DNA of 62,897 nucleotides, filler included, from Pelomyxa schiedti (Eukaryota; Protista; Evosea): the NCBI GenBank assembly GCA_020536535.1. It is 7 parts of 7 records of this genome, joined end to end, with 100 filler letters (N's around TTAATTAATTAA, not from the genome) between each part and the next. Parts side by side here need not be neighbours in the genome. Positions count along the whole stretch, not along the records: positions 26,300 to 36,296 come from JAHLWZ010000271.1; 6 more parts are not named here. One strand, 5' to 3'. Position 1 is the first letter of the stretch; every line of letters begins with the position of its first letter. The notes beneath the pieces are model-generated. The model did no database searches, was not told the origin of the DNA, and worked only from the letters and a program-made list of their open reading frames with translations. The position numbers and the translations under genes were made by a program. Of this stretch, positions 7,682 through 36,296 are shown one piece after another.

Positions 7682-9217
7682 CTAACTCTTTACTAGCACA
7701 AACAGGGCAGCTTCGGTTGCACCAAGCCTCACATTATGTGTGGAAACAAGTGTTAATTCTTCTGAATGTTCACATATTGACTCTGGAATCAGCTGATTGC
7801 GTGGTGCAAGAAAAACTGCAATTCCAGACTGCTTGAGCAATGACTTGGTGGTATGTATAATTTGAGAATACAGTGTACTAAGAGTTGTTCCATTTAGGGG
7901 TGTATGCTTCTGGCCAAATGGAGCATCACACAAAATGACATCAAAGCCGCCAAAGTCCTTTCGGAACATCTGGGGTAGAGTTTGTATATCTGCCGCTACG
8001 AGTTGTATGCTGTTGTTAATGTGTGCCGCTTCAGAGTTTAATTTTGCCTTATGCAGCTGCTCGGTAGATATATCGGCTCCTGTGCAATGTATTCCCCTCC
8101 AACAAACAGCAGCTTCCACAAGTATTGTTCCTTGCCCGCACATTGGATCAAGCACTGTAGCTGAATATTGCTTCGGTACCAATGAGGAAGAACTCGACAC
8201 AGTGCCGCAGGTTATCTCGTGTTTAGAAAGGTTAGCCAGAACACACATAGCATGAGCTATAGTTGGCCGCATTCCCCAATGTGGAATATATGGCCTCACA
8301 GATAGTGGCTCTCCAGATAAAGGAAATCCGCACACAATTGCGTTCAAGTCCATGCGAATTGTTATCTCCAGTTCAAAGTTTCGTGGTGATGCTCTCCAGT
8401 TACTTCCGCTGGTGAATGATATCAAGCGAGCAAGCTCAGCAGAAAGGGAATCACTATTGCTCCTTGGAGTTGTGCTATTCTTATCCCGGGATATTTTGCA
8501 TGAAACTCGGAATCCTCCAGGTACCCCAACCTTCAAGTTTGCAGAACCCGTTTTCACTTTCCTCCACAAGCAATAAGCGGCACTCCAATCAACTCGTCTC
8601 ACGAAATCCTTCAGCTTCTCCTCTGAGGAGGTTTCCTTGCCCCTCGGAAATTGCGGGATTCTTTGCACTCTGGCAAGCAGAAATACTCTCTCCACAAGCT
8701 TCAGGTGCATAGCAACATCCCTCAACTGCCTTGGTGTTATCCAATCAGGTAATTCATTGTTCCCTCTCAATCCAGTACCGCTTTCCTCCGCATCACCACA
8801 TTTGCAATTGGATTCGCACTTGCAGATTCCTGAAAATTGCACAATGACCTTACCCGGCAACGCCCAGACTTCAAAAGCCTCCTCCTCAGTCACACTACCA
8901 TTCCTCCCCAACCCACAATTGCAACATAAGCCGCCGCCGCTGCCGCCACCACTTGCTCCCACAATTCCCCCCGAGCCGTGCTCCTTTCTCTTGACTGGTA
9001 GCAACGGCGCCGGCGTCGAATCAGAAGCCGATACGCCCTCGCTCCCCCTGGAGGCCCCAGTCTCTTCGCGGGCACAGCAACTCCCATAATTGCACGCGGC
9101 CTCTGCCCCGTGGTGGCGCCACAGGGATCCGATGGCGACCCGCAACTCCGACTCGGCCAGTGGCTCCAGCCCACGGCCCACAGTTGCGAACACACCCCCG
9201 CACGCGACGTTCATCAC
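7682..9217 (-). CDS. THUMPD2: THUMP-domain class I RNA (guanine-N2)-methyltransferase, THUMPD2-like; intronless
   Basis: N-terminal FATVGRGLEP; THUMP FRVSCK; MRPTIAHAM; SAM motif I VLDPMCGQGTILVEAA; motif IV ILCDAPFGQK. Confidence 0.8.
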   Translation of the reverse strand: MMNVACGGVFATVGRGLEPLAESELRVAIGSLWRHHGAEAACNYGSCCAREETGASRGSEGVSASDSTPAPLLPVKRKEHGSGGIVGASGGGSGGGLCCNCGLGRNGSVTEEEAFEVWALPGKVIVQFSGICKCESNCKCGDAEESGTGLRGNNELPDWITPRQLRDVAMHLKLVERVFLLARVQRIPQFPRGKETSSEEKLKDFVRRVDWSAAYCLWRKVKTGSANLKVGVPGGFRVSCKISRDKNSTTPRSNSDSLSAELARLISFTSGSNWRASPRNFELEITIRMDLNAIVCGFPLSGEPLSVRPYIPHWGMRPTIAHAMCVLANLSKHEITCGTVSSSSSLVPKQYSATVLDPMCGQGTILVEAAVCWRGIHCTGADISTEQLHKAKLNSEAAHINNSIQLVAADIQTLPQMFRKDFGGFDVILCDAPFGQKHTPLNGTTLSTLYSQIIHTTKSLLKQSGIAVFLAPRNQLIPESICEHSEELTLVSTHNVRLGATEAALFVLVKS

Positions 9218-9347
9218 TTGATAGTTCTGTTAAAAAACAAAAAGATGGAAACCTGAACCATACACATCGCCAAAAGGACTTCGTTTTCTTGAGAAATTTC
9301 TCTGGCGAGGTCCATTTGTGGGATTGTTTCTTGTTCACATGAACATG

Positions 9348-10488
9348 TCACTCTTGTTTTGCCAGCCACAGCTTGGTTGATGCAGAGTAGTGTTTCCAGA
9401 ACCTGGGCATGCTCTTTTCTGACTGGCAGAACTCCACAATCTCGTCGTTGGTCAGCCCCAAGGTGCGGATGCAGTGCTCAATGTGACGCGGGGAGGCAAC
9501 AATGGCCCTCATCACATGGAGGCTTTCCCTGGCGAGGTCTCCTGTGATTTCTTCCGGGAACATCCTGTGCAGCATCTTCCACATTGCCAGGCTGATTTTT
9601 CCAACTGACCACGTGTTCATCTTCATAAAAATAGCACGGACCTGCATTTTTTTTTCGTGTGTGTATGTGTACTTTGTGAGTAGTGGTTTTCAAAAAAAAA
9701 CTCTGGGATTGGGTAGTACCTGAGGAAATGGTATGTTGAACTTTCGTATCAGCCACTCAGCAGTGCTTGTCTTGGAGTGACTGACCAACTGCATCAACAG
9801 GGAGGAGTTGGCGCGATTCTGGAGTTGGCACAATTGTAGGTGGTTACTCTCAACCAGCCACTTCACAGCTTTTGTAGAACTGAAGGAGTGTTGACACAAG
9901 CTGGATGCTACCCCTGACTGTGACCACCACGCTATTTGTTGTGCTGATGAGAAGTCCACCCTTGGAGCGTAAAGTGAGAGAGCTTTCCACGCCAGATTGG
10001 CTTGGTCATGTGGCAGCTGAAACGAGTTAAGTAGGTACAAAGTGCCATCGTAGTTATCATTGTCGAGACATGCACGAACTGCCGGAGCAACCTCGGTCAC
10101 ATCAATAGATTCCTTTGGAATACGTTGGAGAACTCCGGCATTTGCTTTTTTGCAGCGGGCACAATCCAACAGTGTCAGATATTTCTTGGTGCCGGTTGGT
10201 CCTTGTTGCTGGGTTTCACTTTGTGGTTGTTGCTGAGAGGGTTTCTTGAAGCCAGGTGGCAACTTCCAAATTTTGGGCCAACAGAGCTTTTTGGATGGCA
10301 GATTGGAGGTCTTTTGGTGGCAAGGTGACCCTCTGCAGCATGAACCTCACTACTTCAATGCTATCTTTCGTATTACAAAAGGCAGATTCCAGATTATGGG
10401 GTCCCACAGGTACAGGGACATGACAATGATCATCAAGCCACTCCATAAGGGACGCATCGCAGACCTGGTGTAACGCACGAAACATCAT
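9348..10488 (-). pseudogene. Ankyrin-like helical-repeat protein of a lineage-expanded family; apparent frameshift and probable 5' truncation
   Basis: Repeated helical motifs (QNLEVATWL, KAVKWLV, TSTAEWLIRKF). The frame breaks at ~10215-10260 in a CAA-rich stretch. One plausible intron lies at ~9642-9719. There is an in-frame stop 6 codons upstream of the 10488 ATG and no AG acceptor in between. Confidence 0.5.
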
Positions 10489-26299: not shown

Positions 26300-27286
26300 A
26301 TGGGAGTCACGAGGGAAATTAAGCTGCACAACTGCTGGCCCTGGGATAAGTTCCCCCGCGGACCAATTCCCATAAGCCCGTCACACGTTGTACTCACCGA
26401 GTCGATAACAGCCGACTTGGTACAGAACTCACTGCTCAACGTGATGACTCAGCAGAGGCAGTTGATGTTGTCTGGCAAAAGATTCGGTGTGACGAGTGCA
26501 CAAAGCAGCAACAACAAGTGGTGGGTGCGTTGCGATGGTGACGGCACACTGGCAATTGCAAGCCTGATTCTGATTATGGGTAATACTGGTGGGGGTAACG
26601 CTGGAAACGACATCGAAAAGGTGAAAGTGGTGGAAATATCGATGGAGTTCCCCAAAGTACCAGAACTGAAATGTGCCTCAGTTTCATTCTCCATGAAGAC
26701 TCCCAATGAGTTGGTTCTGGTGATGCACGATTCCGCGAGGACAAGAAACATCCTTGCTGTGGTTGATGTTGAGAGGACATTCACATCCAATAAGCTTGCC
26801 ATTTTGAGCATCATCACGTGTCTTGCAACAGCCCGAGGTTCCATTGCAACCTCCTGCGTTTGCATGACAAAATCAACTGGTCAGCGTTCCTTGTTTGTGA
26901 AAGGGCACTATCTTGCAACGGGCCGTGCCACTGTTTATGAAGTTGTCGGGGAGCCTGATGGTGAGATGGTGCCGATTTCCAATCACGTTGGGGGACTGTC
27001 ACAGTTGAGTTCCTCACTGTTTTGCATCGCAAAGAGTGGTGGATGTGTTGCTGAGATTTGGGATTGTCACAACACTTCATCACCACTGAAAGTGATTGAG
27101 GCCATGCCGCAGTCGTCACTGCTGGCACTGGTGCTGGCACACCCAGAGGTTACCTTTCAGAAATCCCAGACCTCATACAAGAATAACAGCATTGAGGTTT
27201 TTGTTGCTGCATCCAAGATTGGAACACTCTTGTTTCCCTCTCAAACAAGTGAGTTTGGTTGCTTTACCTTGTCACACACCACATAA
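26300..27286 (+). CDS. Header/beta-rich family member 1 (5' end in the gap), intronless
   Basis: MGVTREIKLHNCWPW, SSNNKWWV, VVDVERTF, LSQLSSSLFCI, EIWDC; close paralog of the next gene. Confidence 0.8.
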   Translation: MGVTREIKLHNCWPWDKFPRGPIPISPSHVVLTESITADLVQNSLLNVMTQQRQLMLSGKRFGVTSAQSSNNKWWVRCDGDGTLAIASLILIMGNTGGGNAGNDIEKVKVVEISMEFPKVPELKCASVSFSMKTPNELVLVMHDSARTRNILAVVDVERTFTSNKLAILSIITCLATARGSIATSCVCMTKSTGQRSLFVKGHYLATGRATVYEVVGEPDGEMVPISNHVGGLSQLSSSLFCIAKSGGCVAEIWDCHNTSSPLKVIEAMPQSSLLALVLAHPEVTFQKSQTSYKNNSIEVFVAASKIGTLLFPSQTSEFGCFTLSHTT

Positions 27287-27343
27287 CCCTCTTCCGTTGA
27301 ATCAATTTGTGAGATTAAAGTTGATTTCCGTGAAGGAATTGAA

Positions 27344-28770
27344 ATGCAGCGATCATCTCTGTCGGCGTCGATCTGGGGTGTGTTGTCCTCACTGCACGCG
27401 CGCAAACAACTCCACGCTTTTGCGATGGCATCCCACAATCGGTGCGGTGCGTCGAGCCCAGCCCGCCACTTCGTGTCTCTGACTAGTTCGCCATTGTGGG
27501 ACTGGTGCCTCCACGACACCGAGGTTGTGTACGGCGTTGTTGTTGCGTTGCAAGAGACGAACTGCCTGTGCTACTTCACGTTTGGGGTGTCGTGCGCACT
27601 TATGGGAGTCACGAGGTCGATCAAGCTGCACAACTGCTGGCCCTGGAAGAGAGTTCTCCCCAGACCGATTCCCATAAGCCCGTCACACGTGGTTCTCACC
27701 GAGTCTACTCGCAACACGTTCAGATACTCACTGGTCAACGTGGTTACTCAGCAGAAGCAGTTGATGTTGACAACCACTCACGCAGTGGGCGAGANNNNNN
27801 NNNNNNNNNNNNNNNNNNNNNNNNNNNNNNNNNNNNNNNNNNNNNNNNNNNNNNNNNNNNNNNNNNNNNNNNNNNNNNNNNNNNNNNNNNNNNNATAAGC
27901 CCGTCACACGTGGTTCTCACCGAGTCTACTCGCAACACGTTCAGATACTCACTGGTCAACGTGGTTACTCAGCAGAAGCAGTTGATGTTGACAACCACTC
28001 ACGCAGTGGGCGAGATGAGCACACAAAGCAGCAACAACAAGTGGTGGGTTCACTACGACAACGACGGCAGGCTGACCGTTGCGAGCCTGGCAAAAATTAT
28101 GGGTGGCTGTGGTGGAAGCATCGAAAAGGTGGGAATTGCGGTTGAGACCGAGGCAGAACTTACGTGTGCCGCAATTGCATTCAGCAGGGGGATTCCTAAT
28201 GAAGCAGTTTTGGTTCTGCGCGACCCTGGTAAAAAGAGCAATTTGCTTGTGGTTATTGACGTTGAGAAGACGTACACAACCAAGAAGCTGGCTGTTTTGA
28301 GCTTCACAAAGTGCAACGCAACTCCAGGTTCCATTGCATACTGCATCTTCATGATGAAATCCACTGCTGGTCAGCAGCAGCGTGCCTTGTTTGTGAAGAA
28401 TTTCGATTCACCGAACTGTGCCTCTGTGTATGAGGTAACGGAGTCTCTTGGGGAGATGGTGAAAATTTCCCGCAACGCAGAGACGCTGGCACAGCTGAGC
28501 TCCTCATTGTTTTCTATCACAAAGATCGGCGGCTCTGCGGAGATCTGGGATTGCAACAACACCTCGGCGCCAGTGAGAGTCATCAATGCCAGGCTGCTCT
28601 CTGAACTGACAGCGATGGCATTCCCAGAGTTCATCTTCCATCAGTTCACACTAGAGCTCCCAGACCAGAAGTATTTCATTCGGATCTCTGCTGCCTCCAC
28701 TGGAATGAAAGTTGGCATACTCTCACTTCCCTCTGAAATTCGTTTCTTTGACGTTTTCGCCTTAAGTTGA
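27344..28770 (+). CDS. Header/beta-rich family member 2 (spans a false gap), intronless
   Basis: Header ARKQLHAFAMASHNRCGASSPARHFV...PLWDWCL. The ORF becomes continuous when the 121-nt duplicated flank is merged. Confidence 0.82.
27795..27894. other. Assembly gap with duplicated flanks (27674-27794 = 27895-28015)
   Basis: Identical 121-nt sequence on both sides of N100. Confidence 0.9.
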
Positions 28771-28887
28771 AACAACCTGACACTAATTATATTATATTTT
28801 TCAGTGATTTCACCCTTACCAAGAGAGAGGAGAGGAAGGAAGAGGGGTACCCCCTCCTACTCCAAAGTCTACCCAAGAGAGATAGAA

Positions 28888-30147
28888 TCAGGAGGATGAG
28901 GTAACAACAGTGCAAGATTCAATTTCTATGGGTAAAGTGATGGTTCCCAGGAGGAAACCACTGGAATCTGTAACGTCAAAGGCTTGCTTTGTTGGTTTTC
29001 TGTGGAAGATGAACCCTGATCGGGAAATGGCCAGAGGTGGGTCACTGTTGACCACCTGACTAGCAGCAGGAAAACCTTGCATAACTCTCAGTGGAATTGA
29101 AGACTTGTCCCAGATTTCCACAGTGCCAGAATCCTTCAGGATGCAAAACAAGAAAGTGCTCAACTGTGACAAGCACTGAACGTTGCCAGAAATCCACCTG
29201 TATGCACCCACGCCTTCTGCAATTTCAACCACATCATTGGAATCTGGAGGCAGCTGCACCTGACAAATAATGACACGATCACCATTGGCTTTGTTCATGA
29301 GGAGGCTGGAGGAACGCAAAGGGAACAGGCACTCTGTCATGCTCAACACAGAAGCACTCCCTGTTGTAAACGTATTGTTGACATCGATCACAAGGAGGAA
29401 TTGACTCACATCTACACGAAGCATCAAAACTGCTTCATCTGGTGCATAATTGTTGAATGCAATGCCTATGCACTCGAACCATAAGGACTCCTCCAAGATT
29501 TGATGGCAGTGGCGAAGCTTTACTTTACAACCAGCATCACAGTGTCTACAAAATTTACTCTTCTTCTGATGATGAGGAAGAAGACTACTACACTTTGGAG
29601 CCTCCAAATCACCCTTGCCCAGCAGCAAGCTCAAGTTAACAACCACAAGTGTTCTCTTCCTTAATCCGCCGTAATAATGCAGCCACCACTTATGATTGGC
29701 GCGGTGGACGATATTATCAGTGTTGTGGGTTGCCTCGCTCAGCAGCCACCTGCGCTTCCCAGTCACCACGTCCAGCAGAGAGAAGCTCTGGGTGCGCGCA
29801 GCCATCTTCGTGACGACCAGCCGGTCTGGGTCCACCACTGCAGGGGGGCCCTGCCTCGCGCCCAGGCACCAGCTCCCGCGCGACGCCGCTTCCCTGGTCA
29901 CGCTCATCAGCGTCGGCGACACCCCGAAGGTGTAGTAACTCGCGGAACGGGTCCCCGGCCCGGAAACCACCAGCAGGCCAAAGACGGACTCGGAGTCGGG
30001 GCCGAGGCACCAGTCCCACAATGGCGCGGTTGCGAGCCTGGGCAGAGACACGAAGTGGCGCGCTGGGCTCGACGCTCCGCACCGATTGTGGGACGCCATC
30101 ACCAACGCGAGCAGTTGTTCTCGGGCACGCGGTGCATTGAGCATCAT
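28888..30147 (-). CDS. Header/beta-rich family member 3, intronless
   Basis: MMLNAPRAREQLLALVMASHNRCGASSPARHFV; ANHKWWLHY; LSQLSTFLFCI; VTDSSGFLLGTITLP. Confidence 0.85.
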   Translation of the reverse strand: MMLNAPRAREQLLALVMASHNRCGASSPARHFVSLPRLATAPLWDWCLGPDSESVFGLLVVSGPGTRSASYYTFGVSPTLMSVTREAASRGSWCLGARQGPPAVVDPDRLVVTKMAARTQSFSLLDVVTGKRRWLLSEATHNTDNIVHRANHKWWLHYYGGLRKRTLVVVNLSLLLGKGDLEAPKCSSLLPHHQKKSKFCRHCDAGCKVKLRHCHQILEESLWFECIGIAFNNYAPDEAVLMLRVDVSQFLLVIDVNNTFTTGSASVLSMTECLFPLRSSSLLMNKANGDRVIICQVQLPPDSNDVVEIAEGVGAYRWISGNVQCLSQLSTFLFCILKDSGTVEIWDKSSIPLRVMQGFPAASQVVNSDPPLAISRSGFIFHRKPTKQAFDVTDSSGFLLGTITLPIEIESCTVVTSSS

Positions 30148-30236
30148 GATGGTATGAATAAGTGAGTTTTCGCGGAAGTTAATGATGCAGAAGGAGGGAC
30201 AAACAGTTTTATTTGTGGAAATCATTCATCAGCGTT

Positions 30237-31478
30237 TCAAGAGGCACCAGCAGTGAACGAATCAATCTCTATGGGTAAGGTGATGGTGCCCAGGAGGAAC
30301 CCAGTGGAGTCTGTCACGAAAACGGATTGCTTGGTTCTTTTTCGGCGGAAGATGAAGCCTGATTGTGAAATGACCAGAGGTGGTTCAGAAGAAGTACGGT
30401 AGTGCAGAATCCGCAGTGGTTTTGAGGAGTGAAAATCCATCCTGCAGTCCCATACTTCGACATCTGAAGAAATCTTCAGGATGCAAAACAAGAAAGTGCT
30501 CAACTGTGACAATCCCTGAACGTGACCAGAAATAAAGCTGCATTCACCAACACCTTCTTCAACTTTAACCACATAGTCATCACCAAAATGTGGAATCATC
30601 TGAACTTGGCAAATTAACACACGATCACCACCATTATTGGCTTTGCTCATGAGGAGGCTGGAGGAACGCAAACGAATCACACCAACGAAGAACTGGCACT
30701 TTGTGATGCTAAGCACAGAAGCCCTCCCTGTTGCAAATGTTTTGTTGACATCGATCACAAGCAGGAAGTGACTCCTGCCCACAAGAAGCATCAAAACTGC
30801 CTCATCTGGTGCTGCTTGTTTGTTGAACGCAATCCCTGCGCCCTCAACAAACAAGGAATCCGCCAAGATTTTATCACAGTGAGAGATGTCGACTTCAGCA
30901 CAACCATCACAGCAGTGCCGATTCTGTATACAGCTGCGTGATTTGCACCCTCCAGCCCCCACAGGATCCCCACCCAGCAGCAGCAGGCCCAAGTTAACAA
31001 CCACCAGTGCTCCGCGGTCGTAATGCAGCCACCACCTGTGATTGGCACAATGGACGCTTTCGATATCCGCGGCAGAGCCGTGCTCGCTCAACATCCACCT
31101 GCTCTTCCCAGTCACCACGTCCAACAAACAGAAGCTCTGGCTTCGCCCCTCCTTCTGTGTTACAACCAGGTGGCTTGGATCAGCGACGTGGGTCGCCCAC
31201 AGGCACCAGCTCCCGCGCGGCGTCATTTCCCTGGTCACGCTCATCAGCGTCGGCGACACACCGAATGTGTAGTAACTCGCTGAGCGATTCCCCGGCGTCG
31301 AAACTAAAAGACCAAGAACGACCTCGGAGTCTGGGCCGAGGCACCAGTCCCACAATGGCGACGACGACGTGGCGAGGGCACGCACGAAGTGGCGCGCGGG
31401 GCTCGACGCGCCGCACCGATTGTGGGACGCCATCACCAACGCCAGGATCTGTTCGTGTGCGCGCTGTGCAGCCAGCAT
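30237..31478 (-). CDS. Header/beta-rich family member 4, intronless
   Basis: MLAAQRAHEQILALVMASHNRCGASSPARHFV; close paralog of members 3 and 6. Confidence 0.85.
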   Translation of the reverse strand: MLAAQRAHEQILALVMASHNRCGASSPARHFVRALATSSSPLWDWCLGPDSEVVLGLLVSTPGNRSASYYTFGVSPTLMSVTREMTPRGSWCLWATHVADPSHLVVTQKEGRSQSFCLLDVVTGKSRWMLSEHGSAADIESVHCANHRWWLHYDRGALVVVNLGLLLLGGDPVGAGGCKSRSCIQNRHCCDGCAEVDISHCDKILADSLFVEGAGIAFNKQAAPDEAVLMLLVGRSHFLLVIDVNKTFATGRASVLSITKCQFFVGVIRLRSSSLLMSKANNGGDRVLICQVQMIPHFGDDYVVKVEEGVGECSFISGHVQGLSQLSTFLFCILKISSDVEVWDCRMDFHSSKPLRILHYRTSSEPPLVISQSGFIFRRKRTKQSVFVTDSTGFLLGTITLPIEIDSFTAGAS

Positions 31479-31584
31479 CAGCCCCGCTCTTTTGGTTCGC
31501 TCTTCAGAGAAGATAAGCAGGTGAAAACCAGGAATCTCTTGCCATTCTAAATCTAGATTCACTAGCCAACAACTTTTCTTTGTT

Positions 31585-32889
31585 TCAAGGGAGTGCATTC
31601 ACACGGAATTGGGACCAGAGTGTGTCCAACTCAAAGGTGGCAACATACAAGCCAGTGGAGTCAGTCACATCAACGCTCTCATATCCATGCTTGTGGAACA
31701 GGAACCCTGATGCAGCAACCACACGAGATTCCACACCAACGTGCCTTGCTGGCAGAACCCTTAGTGGGGCTGTGGTGTTGTTGCAATCCCAGATTTCAAT
31801 CATCTGACATCTGTTCTTTGTGATGCAGAACAGAGAACCACTGAGCTGTGACAACTGGTTTGTGTCGCGGCAGAGTATCCTCATGGAACCATCATGAGCG
31901 TACTCTTTTACTTCATACACCGTGTTGGAATTCCTTCCAGTGCACAACTCCACAAAGATACCACGCTCACCGTTGGATTTTCTCAATGCAACCGCTGATT
32001 CGAAGAACTTGAAGGCTGATGGAAGCACACACTTGGTCAAACTCAACACTGTGAGGTTCCTTCTCCTGTATGTCTCGTTGATATCAACAACCATGAGAAT
32101 CAGGCCGTGAGGGGCGAAGGAACCTTCAAGAATCACCAGTAATGCTTCATCTGGAACATTCTTGTTGAATGAAATAGAGGTGCACTCGTTGCCATCAGCA
32201 AACACATCACTCAAAACAACAGCAGCATCGTCATCATCACCCTCACGATGTGCCGATGCATCAGCAGCGAGATAACTATTGCGATTGCCATTTCCATTGC
32301 AGTGGCTGTGATGATGATCACCAACTGGGAGGACGCTGGCCACCGCCAATATCCCTCCATTGCTGTGCACCCACCACTTGTGGTTCCCGCCATCCACATG
32401 ATTGACAGTGTAGGTCTCAGTCAGCAACAGACGGCCCAGCTGGTGCCTCTGCTGCCGCTGCTGCTCTGTTGGTTTGCCAATGTCACTCAGGAAGAACATC
32501 GCGACTCCGTCGTCCTCGTCGGCGTACTTGCTGACCAGGAGGCCGCAGCTCAGAAGGGAGTCGTGCCTGCTGTTGGCAGGAATTTTCGCTGGAATCCACG
32601 TGTTGTGGAGCGTCAAGCCCCTCGTGACGCTCGACAGCGCCGAAGAGATCCCAAACGTGAAGTAGCGCCTCCTTTCGAATCGGCACGTGGCGGTCGTGGC
32701 ACCAAACACGACCTCGGTGTCGCGGAGGCACCAGTCCCACAATGGCGCGGTCGCGAGGGGCGGGAGGGACACGAAGTGGCGGGCTGGGCTCGACGCACCG
32801 CACCGATTGTGGGATGCCATCACCAACGCAAGAAGTTGTTCTCGTGCCATAAGTGTGGTCGAGGCTGCGGTTGTTGTTGCCGACATCAT
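31585..32889 (-). CDS. Header/beta-rich family member 5, intronless
   Basis: AREQLLALVMASHNRCGASSPARHFV header; more divergent body with NHKWWVH, LSQLSGSLFCI and EIWDCNN. Confidence 0.85.
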   Translation of the reverse strand: MMSATTTAASTTLMAREQLLALVMASHNRCGASSPARHFVSLPPLATAPLWDWCLRDTEVVFGATTATCRFERRRYFTFGISSALSSVTRGLTLHNTWIPAKIPANSRHDSLLSCGLLVSKYADEDDGVAMFFLSDIGKPTEQQRQQRHQLGRLLLTETYTVNHVDGGNHKWWVHSNGGILAVASVLPVGDHHHSHCNGNGNRNSYLAADASAHREGDDDDAAVVLSDVFADGNECTSISFNKNVPDEALLVILEGSFAPHGLILMVVDINETYRRRNLTVLSLTKCVLPSAFKFFESAVALRKSNGERGIFVELCTGRNSNTVYEVKEYAHDGSMRILCRDTNQLSQLSGSLFCITKNRCQMIEIWDCNNTTAPLRVLPARHVGVESRVVAASGFLFHKHGYESVDVTDSTGLYVATFELDTLWSQFRVNALP

Positions 32890-33038
32890 GGTGATTTTTG
32901 TGAGTTTTCTTTGTGTTTTGACTGGTTTTTTTTTTTTTTTTGAAATCTCACATTAGCATACGACGTTGCCATTGCTGCACATTCCTGAAAGAAAAGATGC
33001 AGGTACTCCATAGCACAAACTTTATTGTGTGATGGGAA

Positions 33039-34271
33039 TCAGGAGGCAACGACAGTGCACGAATCAATCTCTATGGGTAAAGTGATGGTTCCCAAGAGGA
33101 AACCACTGGAATCTGTCACATCAAAGGCTTGCTTTGATGTTTTTCTGTGGAAGATGAGCCCCGACTGGGAAATTACCAGAGGTGTGTCACTGCCTTGAAA
33201 ACCTTGCAGAACCCTCAGTGGTGCTGAGGAGGCATTGCTACAGTCCCAAATTTCAACAACAGTGGCAAAATTCTTCATGGAACCACCCTTCAGGATGCAA
33301 AACAAGAAAGTGCTCAACTGTGACAAGCACAGAACATGACCAGAAATGAACCTGCACGCACCAACACCTTCTGTAACTTCAACCACAGAATCACAGCCGA
33401 AAGCCGGAATCATTTGAACTTGGCAAATGAATACACGATCACCACTGGATTTGTTCATAACGAGGCTGGAGGAACGCAAGTTATTAATGTCAACAGAGAA
33501 CAGGCATTTCGTCATGCTCAACACAGAAACATGTTTGGTGGCAAATGTCTTGTTGACATCGATCACAAGCAGGAACTGACTCGTTTCCACGAGAAGCATC
33601 AAAACTGCCTCATCTGGAAATTGTTTGTTGAACGCAATCCCTGGGCACATGAAAAACAAACACTCTCTCAAGATTTGATGGCAGTTGTGAATCTTTATTT
33701 TTGCCGCGCAACAGTCAGAGTGTAGAACAGCCTGGTTCTGATGAAGATGAAGGTCACCCAAATCGCCGCTCAAGTTTACAACCACCAGTTTTCTAGATCG
33801 ATGGTCATAATGCAACCACCACCTGTGATTGGCAGCGTGTACGATATCCGCGGGAGAGTTGCTCTCGCTCAGCAGCCACGTGCGCTTCTCAGTCGCCACG
33901 TCCAACAACGAGAAGCTCTGGCTTCGCCCAGCCATCTGCGTGACAACCAGGCGATTAGCGTCGACGGCAACGGGGCGCGGCTGGGTAAACCACAGGCACC
34001 AGCTCCCGCGCAACTTCACATCCCTGGTCACGCTCATCAGCGTCGACGACACACCGAATGTGTAGTAACTCGCTGAGCGATTCCCGTGGGTGAGAACAAG
34101 CAGGCCGAGGACGGACTCGGAGTCGGGGCCGAGGCACCAGTCCCACAATGGCGCGGTAGCGAGCGGGGGCAGGGAAACGAAGTGGCGGGCTGGGCTCGAC
34201 GCACCGCACCGATTGTGGGATGCCATCACCAACGCAAGAAGTTGTTCTCGCGCACTTTCTGCAGCCAGCAT
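33039..34271 (-). CDS. Header/beta-rich family member 6, intronless
   Basis: MLAAESAREQLLALVMASHNRCGASSPARHFV; same body motifs; AATAAA downstream at ~33021-33026 (minus strand). Confidence 0.85.
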   Translation of the reverse strand: MLAAESAREQLLALVMASHNRCGASSPARHFVSLPPLATAPLWDWCLGPDSESVLGLLVLTHGNRSASYYTFGVSSTLMSVTRDVKLRGSWCLWFTQPRPVAVDANRLVVTQMAGRSQSFSLLDVATEKRTWLLSESNSPADIVHAANHRWWLHYDHRSRKLVVVNLSGDLGDLHLHQNQAVLHSDCCAAKIKIHNCHQILRECLFFMCPGIAFNKQFPDEAVLMLLVETSQFLLVIDVNKTFATKHVSVLSMTKCLFSVDINNLRSSSLVMNKSSGDRVFICQVQMIPAFGCDSVVEVTEGVGACRFISGHVLCLSQLSTFLFCILKGGSMKNFATVVEIWDCSNASSAPLRVLQGFQGSDTPLVISQSGLIFHRKTSKQAFDVTDSSGFLLGTITLPIEIDSCTVVAS

Positions 34272-34920
34272 CGTTTTCGGGTATTAGCTTTAGCATAAGG
34301 GTGATGATGAGCATCTGAAGCGTCGTTCCTCCCGGGAGACAAAGTTTCGGCGAGAAAGAGGGAGGCTGCGATGGCGCTGGTGAAAACCTCCGGCAACAAA
34401 AAAAAAATAGATCATTGAGATGTGCAAGAGACCTTTTCCTCTGCAACACCAGGTTCTTTCTTTTTTCTTTTTCTTTGACTGCAATTCGCCACATTTTTGA
34501 AAGCTGGTGATTGTGACAAATCGTGGACCGAGTTCTACTCATTTCACTTCAACTTCTGATGAGTCCTCACTACTTGTGGGGAATGCACGAATGATCTCAT
34601 GGTGGATTGATGTGGGACCGGCAGATCTGTTCTAACACAGCCTTGTTGCTGATATCGTTGATCAAGCGCCCGTTTCATTTTCAGGTCGCTCAGGTGGGAC
34701 ACCAGCTCATCCACACCCCCCAATAATAATCGACTTCCGCATGTGAAAGCACAAAACGCGTTTTTCGCAAAATTGAACTTTGAACAAAAAGACCACTTTT
34801 CCTGTACATCGGCAGCTGCACCACCGGTTGATTACAGTACTGAGCACTTGGTTTCCAACCGCCCCTTAATTCAAAGTAATCTCTGCTGAATCCAAAAAAT
34901 AAAAAGCAAGTAACCAACAA

Positions 34921-36296
<1,376 letters not shown>

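Follow-up and report, generated by a model that had tools for sequence, protein, structure and literature searches.

The window is a stretch of 62,897 nucleotides (nt) joined from parts of the Pelomyxa schiedti genome, and its positions 26300-36296 are a complete 9,997-bp contig of the published single-cell assembly of this anaerobic amoeba. The contig carries six uninterrupted paralogous open reading frames (ORFs), two on the plus strand (g1, g2) converging on four on the minus strand (g3 to g6), all where the first-pass annotation had placed them (Table 1). These genes belong to an undescribed, lineage-specific family that combines a known fold and a new N-terminal header in an architecture akin to that of known receptor families. 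The role that is favoured here, tentatively, by analogy and at somewhat less than an even chance, is that of a modular adaptor, in which the constant header would link every member to a single cellular partner or machine common to them all and the variable propellers would bind different targets. The family is massively expanded and, as far as seen, restricted to P. schiedti, and its members are two-module proteins that are probably soluble. A ubiquitin-ligase-type scaffold would be the leading candidate for the shared partner, by analogy with F-box/WD40 and DCAF receptors, and the array would have grown from an intron-free founder gene by tandem and segmental duplication.

The constant header and the propeller body

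All five genes with a 5' end on the contig (g2 to g6) carry the header, and the proposal that it is a constant, separate N-terminal module holds. It is the conservation peak of the protein, with a mean top-residue frequency of 0.52 against 0.28 in the body among 85 full-length family members. The R-C-G motif is invariant in 88 headers, with Q and H nearly invariant, and R28, C29 and G30 each reach at least 94% in the 85-member alignment. The close type of header reads M-A-S-H-N-R-C-G-A-S-S-P-A-R-H-F-V...P-L-W-D-W-C-L and is relaxed in distant members to A-R-D-Q-F/L-x-A-L-x-x-S-S-H-P-R-C-G-x-x-S-P-A-R...L-W; the family-wide consensus is A-R-x-Q-x-x-A-L-x-x-x-S-H-x-R-C-G-x-x-S-P-x-R ... L-W. Between the R-C-G loop and the L-W helix lies a linker of variable length, about 8 to 40 residues in different members.

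The header, about 45 residues long, is predicted to form three short helices around the invariant loop. In the AlphaFold2 model of g5, built on the 85-sequence alignment (predicted local distance difference test, pLDDT, 85.7; predicted template modelling score, pTM, 0.85), these helices span residues 14-25, 36-39 and 43-56 at a pLDDT of about 90 and are followed by the beta domain. The g6 model, built on a 23-sequence alignment (pLDDT 81, pTM 0.80), is confidently all-beta over residues 50-409 and has low confidence in the header. A His/Asp-rich insert at residues 195-214 is the sole poorly modelled part of g5. At the same place g6 has a poorly modelled insert (residues about 165-200, positions about 33670-33780; pLDDT below 50 at 174-184), which with its equivalents in g3 and g4 is a subclade-specific, Cys/His-rich, inter-blade segment (CxxC..C..HCH-like in g3).

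The body is best called a very divergent WD40-like seven-bladed beta-propeller, and the propeller fold proposed from the first reading of the sequence is supported by the seven blades in the models of both g5 and g6. Structural comparisons by Foldseek with the PDB, by shape with the ESM Atlas and by VIA-align each recovered seven-bladed propellers of every kind, at template modelling (TM) scores of 0.5-0.6, Z of 16-18 over 260-320 residues and 3-12% identity. The structural neighbours form a flat list in which none stands out (lactonase/YVTN, methylamine dehydrogenase, BtuG, AztD, mLST8, WDR4, IFT-A). By sequence, no known enzyme or structural family was matched by header or body in Pfam or the PDB. 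Pfam, including its WD40 models, gave nothing meaningful for the six proteins or the 85 full-length members, and sequence searches of the PDB with three profiles gave nothing significant. In the PDB the family profile touched WD40 proteins only, all below significance (p55/CAF1, E 0.06; WDR5, E 7-10), over the blade ending in E-I-W-D. The KIB1-4/DUF295 model (PF03478) matched one of 85 members (E 0.0014, below its gathering score) and none of the other 84. Neither a membrane segment nor a signal-like N-terminus was found, which makes soluble proteins of the cytosol or nucleus probable.

A small three-helix N-terminal module followed by a seven-bladed propeller is also the layout of FBXW and DDB2-type receptors. 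The header could therefore be an extremely divergent F-box or other cullin-adaptor box, and the family the dominant repertoire of Skp1-cullin-F-box (SCF) or cullin-RING ligase (CRL) substrate receptors in Pelomyxa. A three-helix N-terminal module of about 45 amino acids (aa) is what an F-box should show, yet this feature is generic rather than diagnostic. The huge expansion of the family agrees with such a role, and the nearest language-model neighbours were F-box clusters for the header (0.76) and DCAF17 for the whole protein (0.93); these scores lie within the range of shuffled sequences by the tool's own figures, and the DCAF17 recognition score is below the reliability mark, so that they serve as leads only. 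A multi-exon E2-like gene (UQ_con, E 1e-18; HPN motif and Cys present) adjoins family members at two loci (Table 1), which is only a hint of the ubiquitin system; the two genes are paralogues in one duplicated block and count once, not as independent cases. Pfam hmmscan of 8 and then 88 headers at E<=10, however, returned no F-box, F-box-like, LisH or related match, the header profile matched no PDB chain, and in the propeller W-D is followed by C-N, not by the x-R of the DCAF WDxR motif. An invariant R-C-G loop is not known as a feature of the F-box (PF00646), which also counts against this identity. The F-box or BC-box suggestion of the first-pass annotation is left without sequence evidence, the language-model lead to F-box being at noise level, and because every sequence test of membership failed, a divergent F-box or other cullin-adaptor box is considered doubtful.

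Alternatively, the header could be an integral structural or metal-binding lid, held to blade 6 by a Cys3-His zinc staple, or could share with the propeller an active site based on the invariant H-x-R-C-G loop; the proteins would then be binders or enzymes unrelated to ubiquitin ligases. Conserved Cys or His columns number just four in the family alignment: the header contributes H26 and C29, the propeller C354 and C368 (g5 numbering). They suggest a putative Cys3-His metal site that would hold the header and blade 6 together. All four residues are found together in 44 of the 85 members, although this is near the roughly 39 expected under independence. The header is confidently placed only in full-length context with a deep alignment, as seen from the g5 and g6 models, and many seven-bladed structural neighbours are enzymes. 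A header-only word search (proteins of 225-717 aa) and the best 150 of 364 profile matches both found the header only before this propeller, an exclusive pairing that favours the integral reading. A variable linker of the kind described above would be unusual for a rigid lid, and the lid or active-site explanation, the main rival of the adaptor, is regarded as rather unlikely.

A LisH-like or coiled-coil-like header that mediates self-association, producing propeller dimers or oligomers, would have precedents, as LisH-WD40 proteins are common. The spacing of hydrophobic and Gly/Ala/Phe residues in the header (L..LV......G....A..F) may loosely resemble the LisH motif, whereas the LisH model (PF08513) found no match in Pfam. 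Self-association is very improbable, and less likely than an integral lid. An organelle-targeting header was also considered and rejected, on account of the invariant loop and the predicted folded helical unit; the absence of six family members, two of them from this contig, from two supplementary files of the genome paper likewise counts against it.

Family size, history and expression

The g6 protein is 29-71% identical to its paralogues across the family alignment and family profile E-values go down to 1e-176, which places kinship far beyond chance. The genes share the anchors N-x-K/R-W-W, P-D-E, V-x-D-V-x-x-T, L-S-Q-L-S-x-x-L-F-C and E-I/V-W-D. Word-based searches recovered 19 and then 25 relatives, all of them P. 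schiedti "hypothetical proteins" except one Logan contig. A profile search of 1.84 billion representatives, one for each cluster at 50% identity, found 364 proteins at E<=1e-3, 281 at E<=1e-10 and 82 at E<=1e-30, in agreement with the suggestion of a much expanded family. When matches were sampled from top to bottom of the best 150 of these 364, ten out of ten were from P. schiedti. As far as seen from these sequences the family is restricted to this species, and the library may cover other Archamoebae poorly. Patterns of the close-type header, which may miss distant relatives, had no match among JGI metagenome contigs or in IMG/VR. The 149,016 introns of P. schiedti, at an average of 7.43 per gene (PMC8887013), imply about 20,000 genes, and the family would make up about 2% of the gene set if the unlisted matches are Pelomyxa's too.

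Long matches of 800-1800 aa contain either two to four header-propeller units or unrelated UQ_con, kinase, Sel1, Med22 or Tectonic domains. The extra domains are heterogeneous, and because the annotation of this contig is itself faulty (in Pelo_3492 and Pelo_3490), such proteins are most simply taken as merged gene models. All family members are annotated as hypothetical. Neither of two Pelomyxa papers describes such a family; one does not mention gene families or F-box proteins (PMC8887013), and the other does not mention propellers, WD40, ubiquitin or gene families (PMC10579272).

The genes are intron-free, as first described; their ORFs are uninterrupted, and contigs from two single-cell RNA libraries of the genome study are colinear with g3, g4 and g5 without joints. 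This intron-free state is unusual against the host average given above. The RNA-library contigs lie at 28832-29629 on g3, at 30222-30584 and 30690-30915 on g4, and at 31691-32822 on g5; the last has 12 mismatches and 4 gaps and may represent an allele or near paralogue. No contig from either run (X1 or X2) lies on g6. Transcription, on which the first-pass annotation depended, is therefore indicated for g3, g4 and g5 and not for g6, from libraries that can carry DNA. Run X1 covers g4 and g5 and run X2 covers g3, a difference that could reflect cell-to-cell expression of different copies or sparse sampling. In runs X3 and X4, whose library type is unrecorded, joints between the header regions of different paralogues occur within 31338-34131, for example from 31799 to 34131 and from 32719 back to 31338. 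The simplest account of these joints is chimera formation through the conserved header, during amplification or assembly, and not real rearrangement.

Nei-Gojobori comparisons among the window genes gave ratios of non-synonymous to synonymous divergence (dN/dS) of 0-0.42 in the header (dS 0.2-0.8) and 0.37-0.51 in the body (dS 1.5-2 between subclades). Constraint does differ between the two modules, as anticipated, and the sequences show purifying selection on both, with the header under the stronger constraint and the body under a relaxed one. The diversifying selection suspected in the bodies was not found, since sliding-window ratios (pN/pS) among g3, g4 and g6 gave no convincing region above 1. 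The GC content at third codon positions is 0.8-0.9 in the first 150 or so codons of g2 to g6, which cover the header and first blades, compared with about 0.5 downstream. The header regions also coincide with long spurious ORFs, which are read in other frames and from the opposite strand. Identical residues are encoded by identical codons at frequencies of 0.6-0.9 in the header (about 0.5 expected from codon bias) and 0.4-0.55 in the body (0.35 expected). Codon bias thus accounts for some of the low dS of the header, and the remainder could come from patchy gene conversion or nucleotide-level constraint.

A maximum-likelihood tree resolves three subclades, {g1, g2}, {g5 and P0008 of another contig} and {g4, (g3, g6)}, and that other contig (L001) also bears a member of the sister clade to g3/g4/g6. 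Because subclades are split across contigs, tandem duplication combined with segmental duplication or rearrangement is indicated instead of one recent burst. Decaying copies also exist, to judge from L001. A family ORF with a degenerate C-terminus on its minus strand (L001:1075-2364) is annotated as two small genes, and a header remnant lies on the opposite strand downstream of P0005 (L001:7933-8307).

The family might also be selfish or foreign cargo, such as a retrogene, a transposon or giant-virus sequence, that has spread without a conserved host function. Intron-free genes in an intron-rich genome, very short spacers, hundreds of copies, the degenerate copies on L001 and a reverse-transcriptase gene near one member would all fit such an origin. 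In contrast, every pair gives a dN/dS below 1, in the header as in the body, and the close-type header patterns are absent from the viral and metagenome sets searched. Around the genes there are neither terminal repeats nor element boundaries, only similarity between paralogues, and the transposon version was rejected for lack of terminal repeats. Elsewhere in the genome, family members form small clusters that have ordinary host genes around them (kinases, Ras/Roc, clathrin adaptor, Bud13), which also speaks against this explanation. Selfish or foreign cargo is accordingly judged quite improbable, and like self-association less likely than the integral lid.

Gene models, assembly gap and neighbouring genes

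The g1 ORF begins at contig base 1 and its alignment to g2 starts at g2 residue 86, so that its header and first 85 or so codons have been cut off by the contig edge and are not absent from the gene. The likely initiation codons of g3 and g4 were set by comparison of starts across the genes. With these starts the spacers measure 57 nt (g1-g2), 117 nt (g2-g3, convergent), 89 nt (g4-g3), 106 nt (g5-g4) and 149 nt (g6-g5). A comparison of the upstream regions of five genes gave no common motif.

Table 1. Coordinates of the six array genes, the assembly artefact and the E2-like neighbours of other family members. L001 and L002 positions refer to other loci.
Feature	Positions	Strand	Description
g1	26300-27286	+	Propeller body only; identical to annotated protein P0025
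g2	27344-28770	+	Complete once gap is collapsed; coding sequence 27344-27794 joined to 28016-28770, 401 aa; header 27398-27511
g3	28888-30147	-	Longest ORF to 30225; likely start ATGATG at 30147; header 30004-30126
g4	30237-31478	-	Longest ORF to 31598; likely start 31478; header 31338-31460
g5	31585-32889	-	434 aa; header 32725-32847
g6	33039-34271	-	410 aa; header 34131-34253
Scaffolding artefact	27795-28015	.	100 N and second copy of 121-nt contig overlap; not genomic sequence
E2-like gene	L001:3703-5449	-	Beside family members
E2-like gene	L002:~8100-10036	+	Annotation fuses E2 gene to family member as Pelo_1808

The run of Ns in g2 is a scaffolding artefact, across which the sequence continues in the same frame. 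It is bordered by two copies of a 121-nt sequence (27674-27794 and 27895-28015) that are 100% identical, and removal of the Ns with one copy restores a continuous in-frame ORF with header and full body. The assembly was made by SPAdes with k-mers up to 121 and then by P_RNA_scaffolder (PMC8887013). As the duplicate has the length of the largest SPAdes k-mer, two graph-adjacent contigs were joined with their k-mer overlap left in. Their joining through RNA read pairs indirectly hints that g2 is transcribed.

Pelo_3492 and Pelo_3490, the two best database matches, lie on this contig, and the deposited models are faulty at 33039-34271 and 28888-30225 (compared with P0001 and P0002). Pelo_3492, the model of g6, has lost 16 aa, among them the conserved P-D-E anchor, to a spurious intron of 16 codons. 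The start of Pelo_3490 falls within the header, and this model ends in the wrong frame and is truncated at both ends. No identical counterpart of g2 or g4 is present among the retrieved proteins.

Beyond g6, about 700 nt away and divergent to it, a multi-exon alanine aminotransferase-like gene (34982-36296, plus strand) runs off the contig end. One of its ORF fragments (35372-35761) matches human and barley ALT2 structures (3ihj, E 3e-10). At 36047-36102 a T-rich unit of 28 nt is perfectly duplicated in tandem, probably within an intron of this gene.

The adaptor proposal and known receptor systems

Several points weigh against a modular adaptor. The header comes without a known partner and matches no F-box, BC-box, LisH or other model. 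In the header-only search and the best 150 profile matches it is confined to one kind of body, and the recurrence on varied C-terminal domains expected of an F-box is not seen there. Adaptor domains that are truly promiscuous occur with bodies of many types; because the header, unlike these, is seen paired only with this propeller, it may belong to the fold itself instead of serving for docking. Within the body, no window convincingly exceeds a dN/dS of 1, with one 30-codon window reaching 1.22. The RNA support comes from assembled contigs of libraries able to carry DNA and is supportive rather than proof. Species assignments come from a sample within the best 150 of the 364 profile matches, with 214 lying beyond it.

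In its most far-reaching form, the adaptor proposal would make the header a docking domain not described before, an "RCG box", defining a new receptor class that amounts to about 2% of the gene set and plugs hundreds of propellers into one ubiquitin-ligase-like or other effector machine. This form is distinctly unlikely. Constant-adaptor/variable-receptor families elsewhere, such as plant and nematode F-box, BTB-MATH and NLR (nucleotide-binding leucine-rich repeat) proteins, mark fast-evolving recognition and often innate immunity. The cytosol of Pelomyxa houses free bacteria and a methanogen (PMC10579272), and a repertoire of "RCG box" receptors, if real, could police a cytoplasm with permanent bacterial and archaeal endosymbionts. 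A role in immunity or symbiont control is pure speculation, and if it were true, the new repertoire would offer a way into how a eukaryote manages its resident prokaryotes. More generally, should the 364 representatives all come from Pelomyxa, about one gene in 50 belongs to a family unnamed in databases. The most conserved part of this intron-free family in an intron-rich genome is a 45-residue module that has no detectable relative. A partner of the header, if there is one, would define a new protein-interaction domain; a partnerless header would leave a lineage-specific propeller expansion, mainly of interest to protist genomics.

Various known systems resemble the Pelomyxa family in part. 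Generic seven-bladed propellers (lactonase/YVTN, methylamine dehydrogenase heavy chain, BtuG, mLST8, WDR4) have the same fold, but none carries the Pelomyxa header and their identity to the Pelomyxa body is the 3-12% given above. LisH-WD40 proteins of the LIS1 and TBL1 type likewise place a short N-terminal helical motif before a WD40 propeller, whereas the Pelomyxa header has no match to the LisH model. The DCAF/DDB2-type CRL4 receptors, DCAF17 among them, consist of a helical H-box and a seven-bladed WD40 domain and thus share module order and blade number. Unlike these, the Pelomyxa family has a conserved W366-D367-C368-N369 instead of WDxR, with no sequence homology. The FBXW receptors, plant F-box-Kelch proteins and F-box-DUF295 proteins (KIB1) likewise have a small N-terminal helical module before a beta-propeller, but the KIB1-4 propeller model touches only one of the 85 Pelomyxa members, as noted above. 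The Pelomyxa header differs from those of FBXW and plant F-box families in having an invariant R-C-G loop and no F-box signature, and from F-box families in never being seen on leucine-rich repeat, Kelch or other bodies. What the Pelomyxa family does share with the FBXW and plant F-box families is a large lineage-specific expansion in which one constant end is joined to a variable recognition domain.

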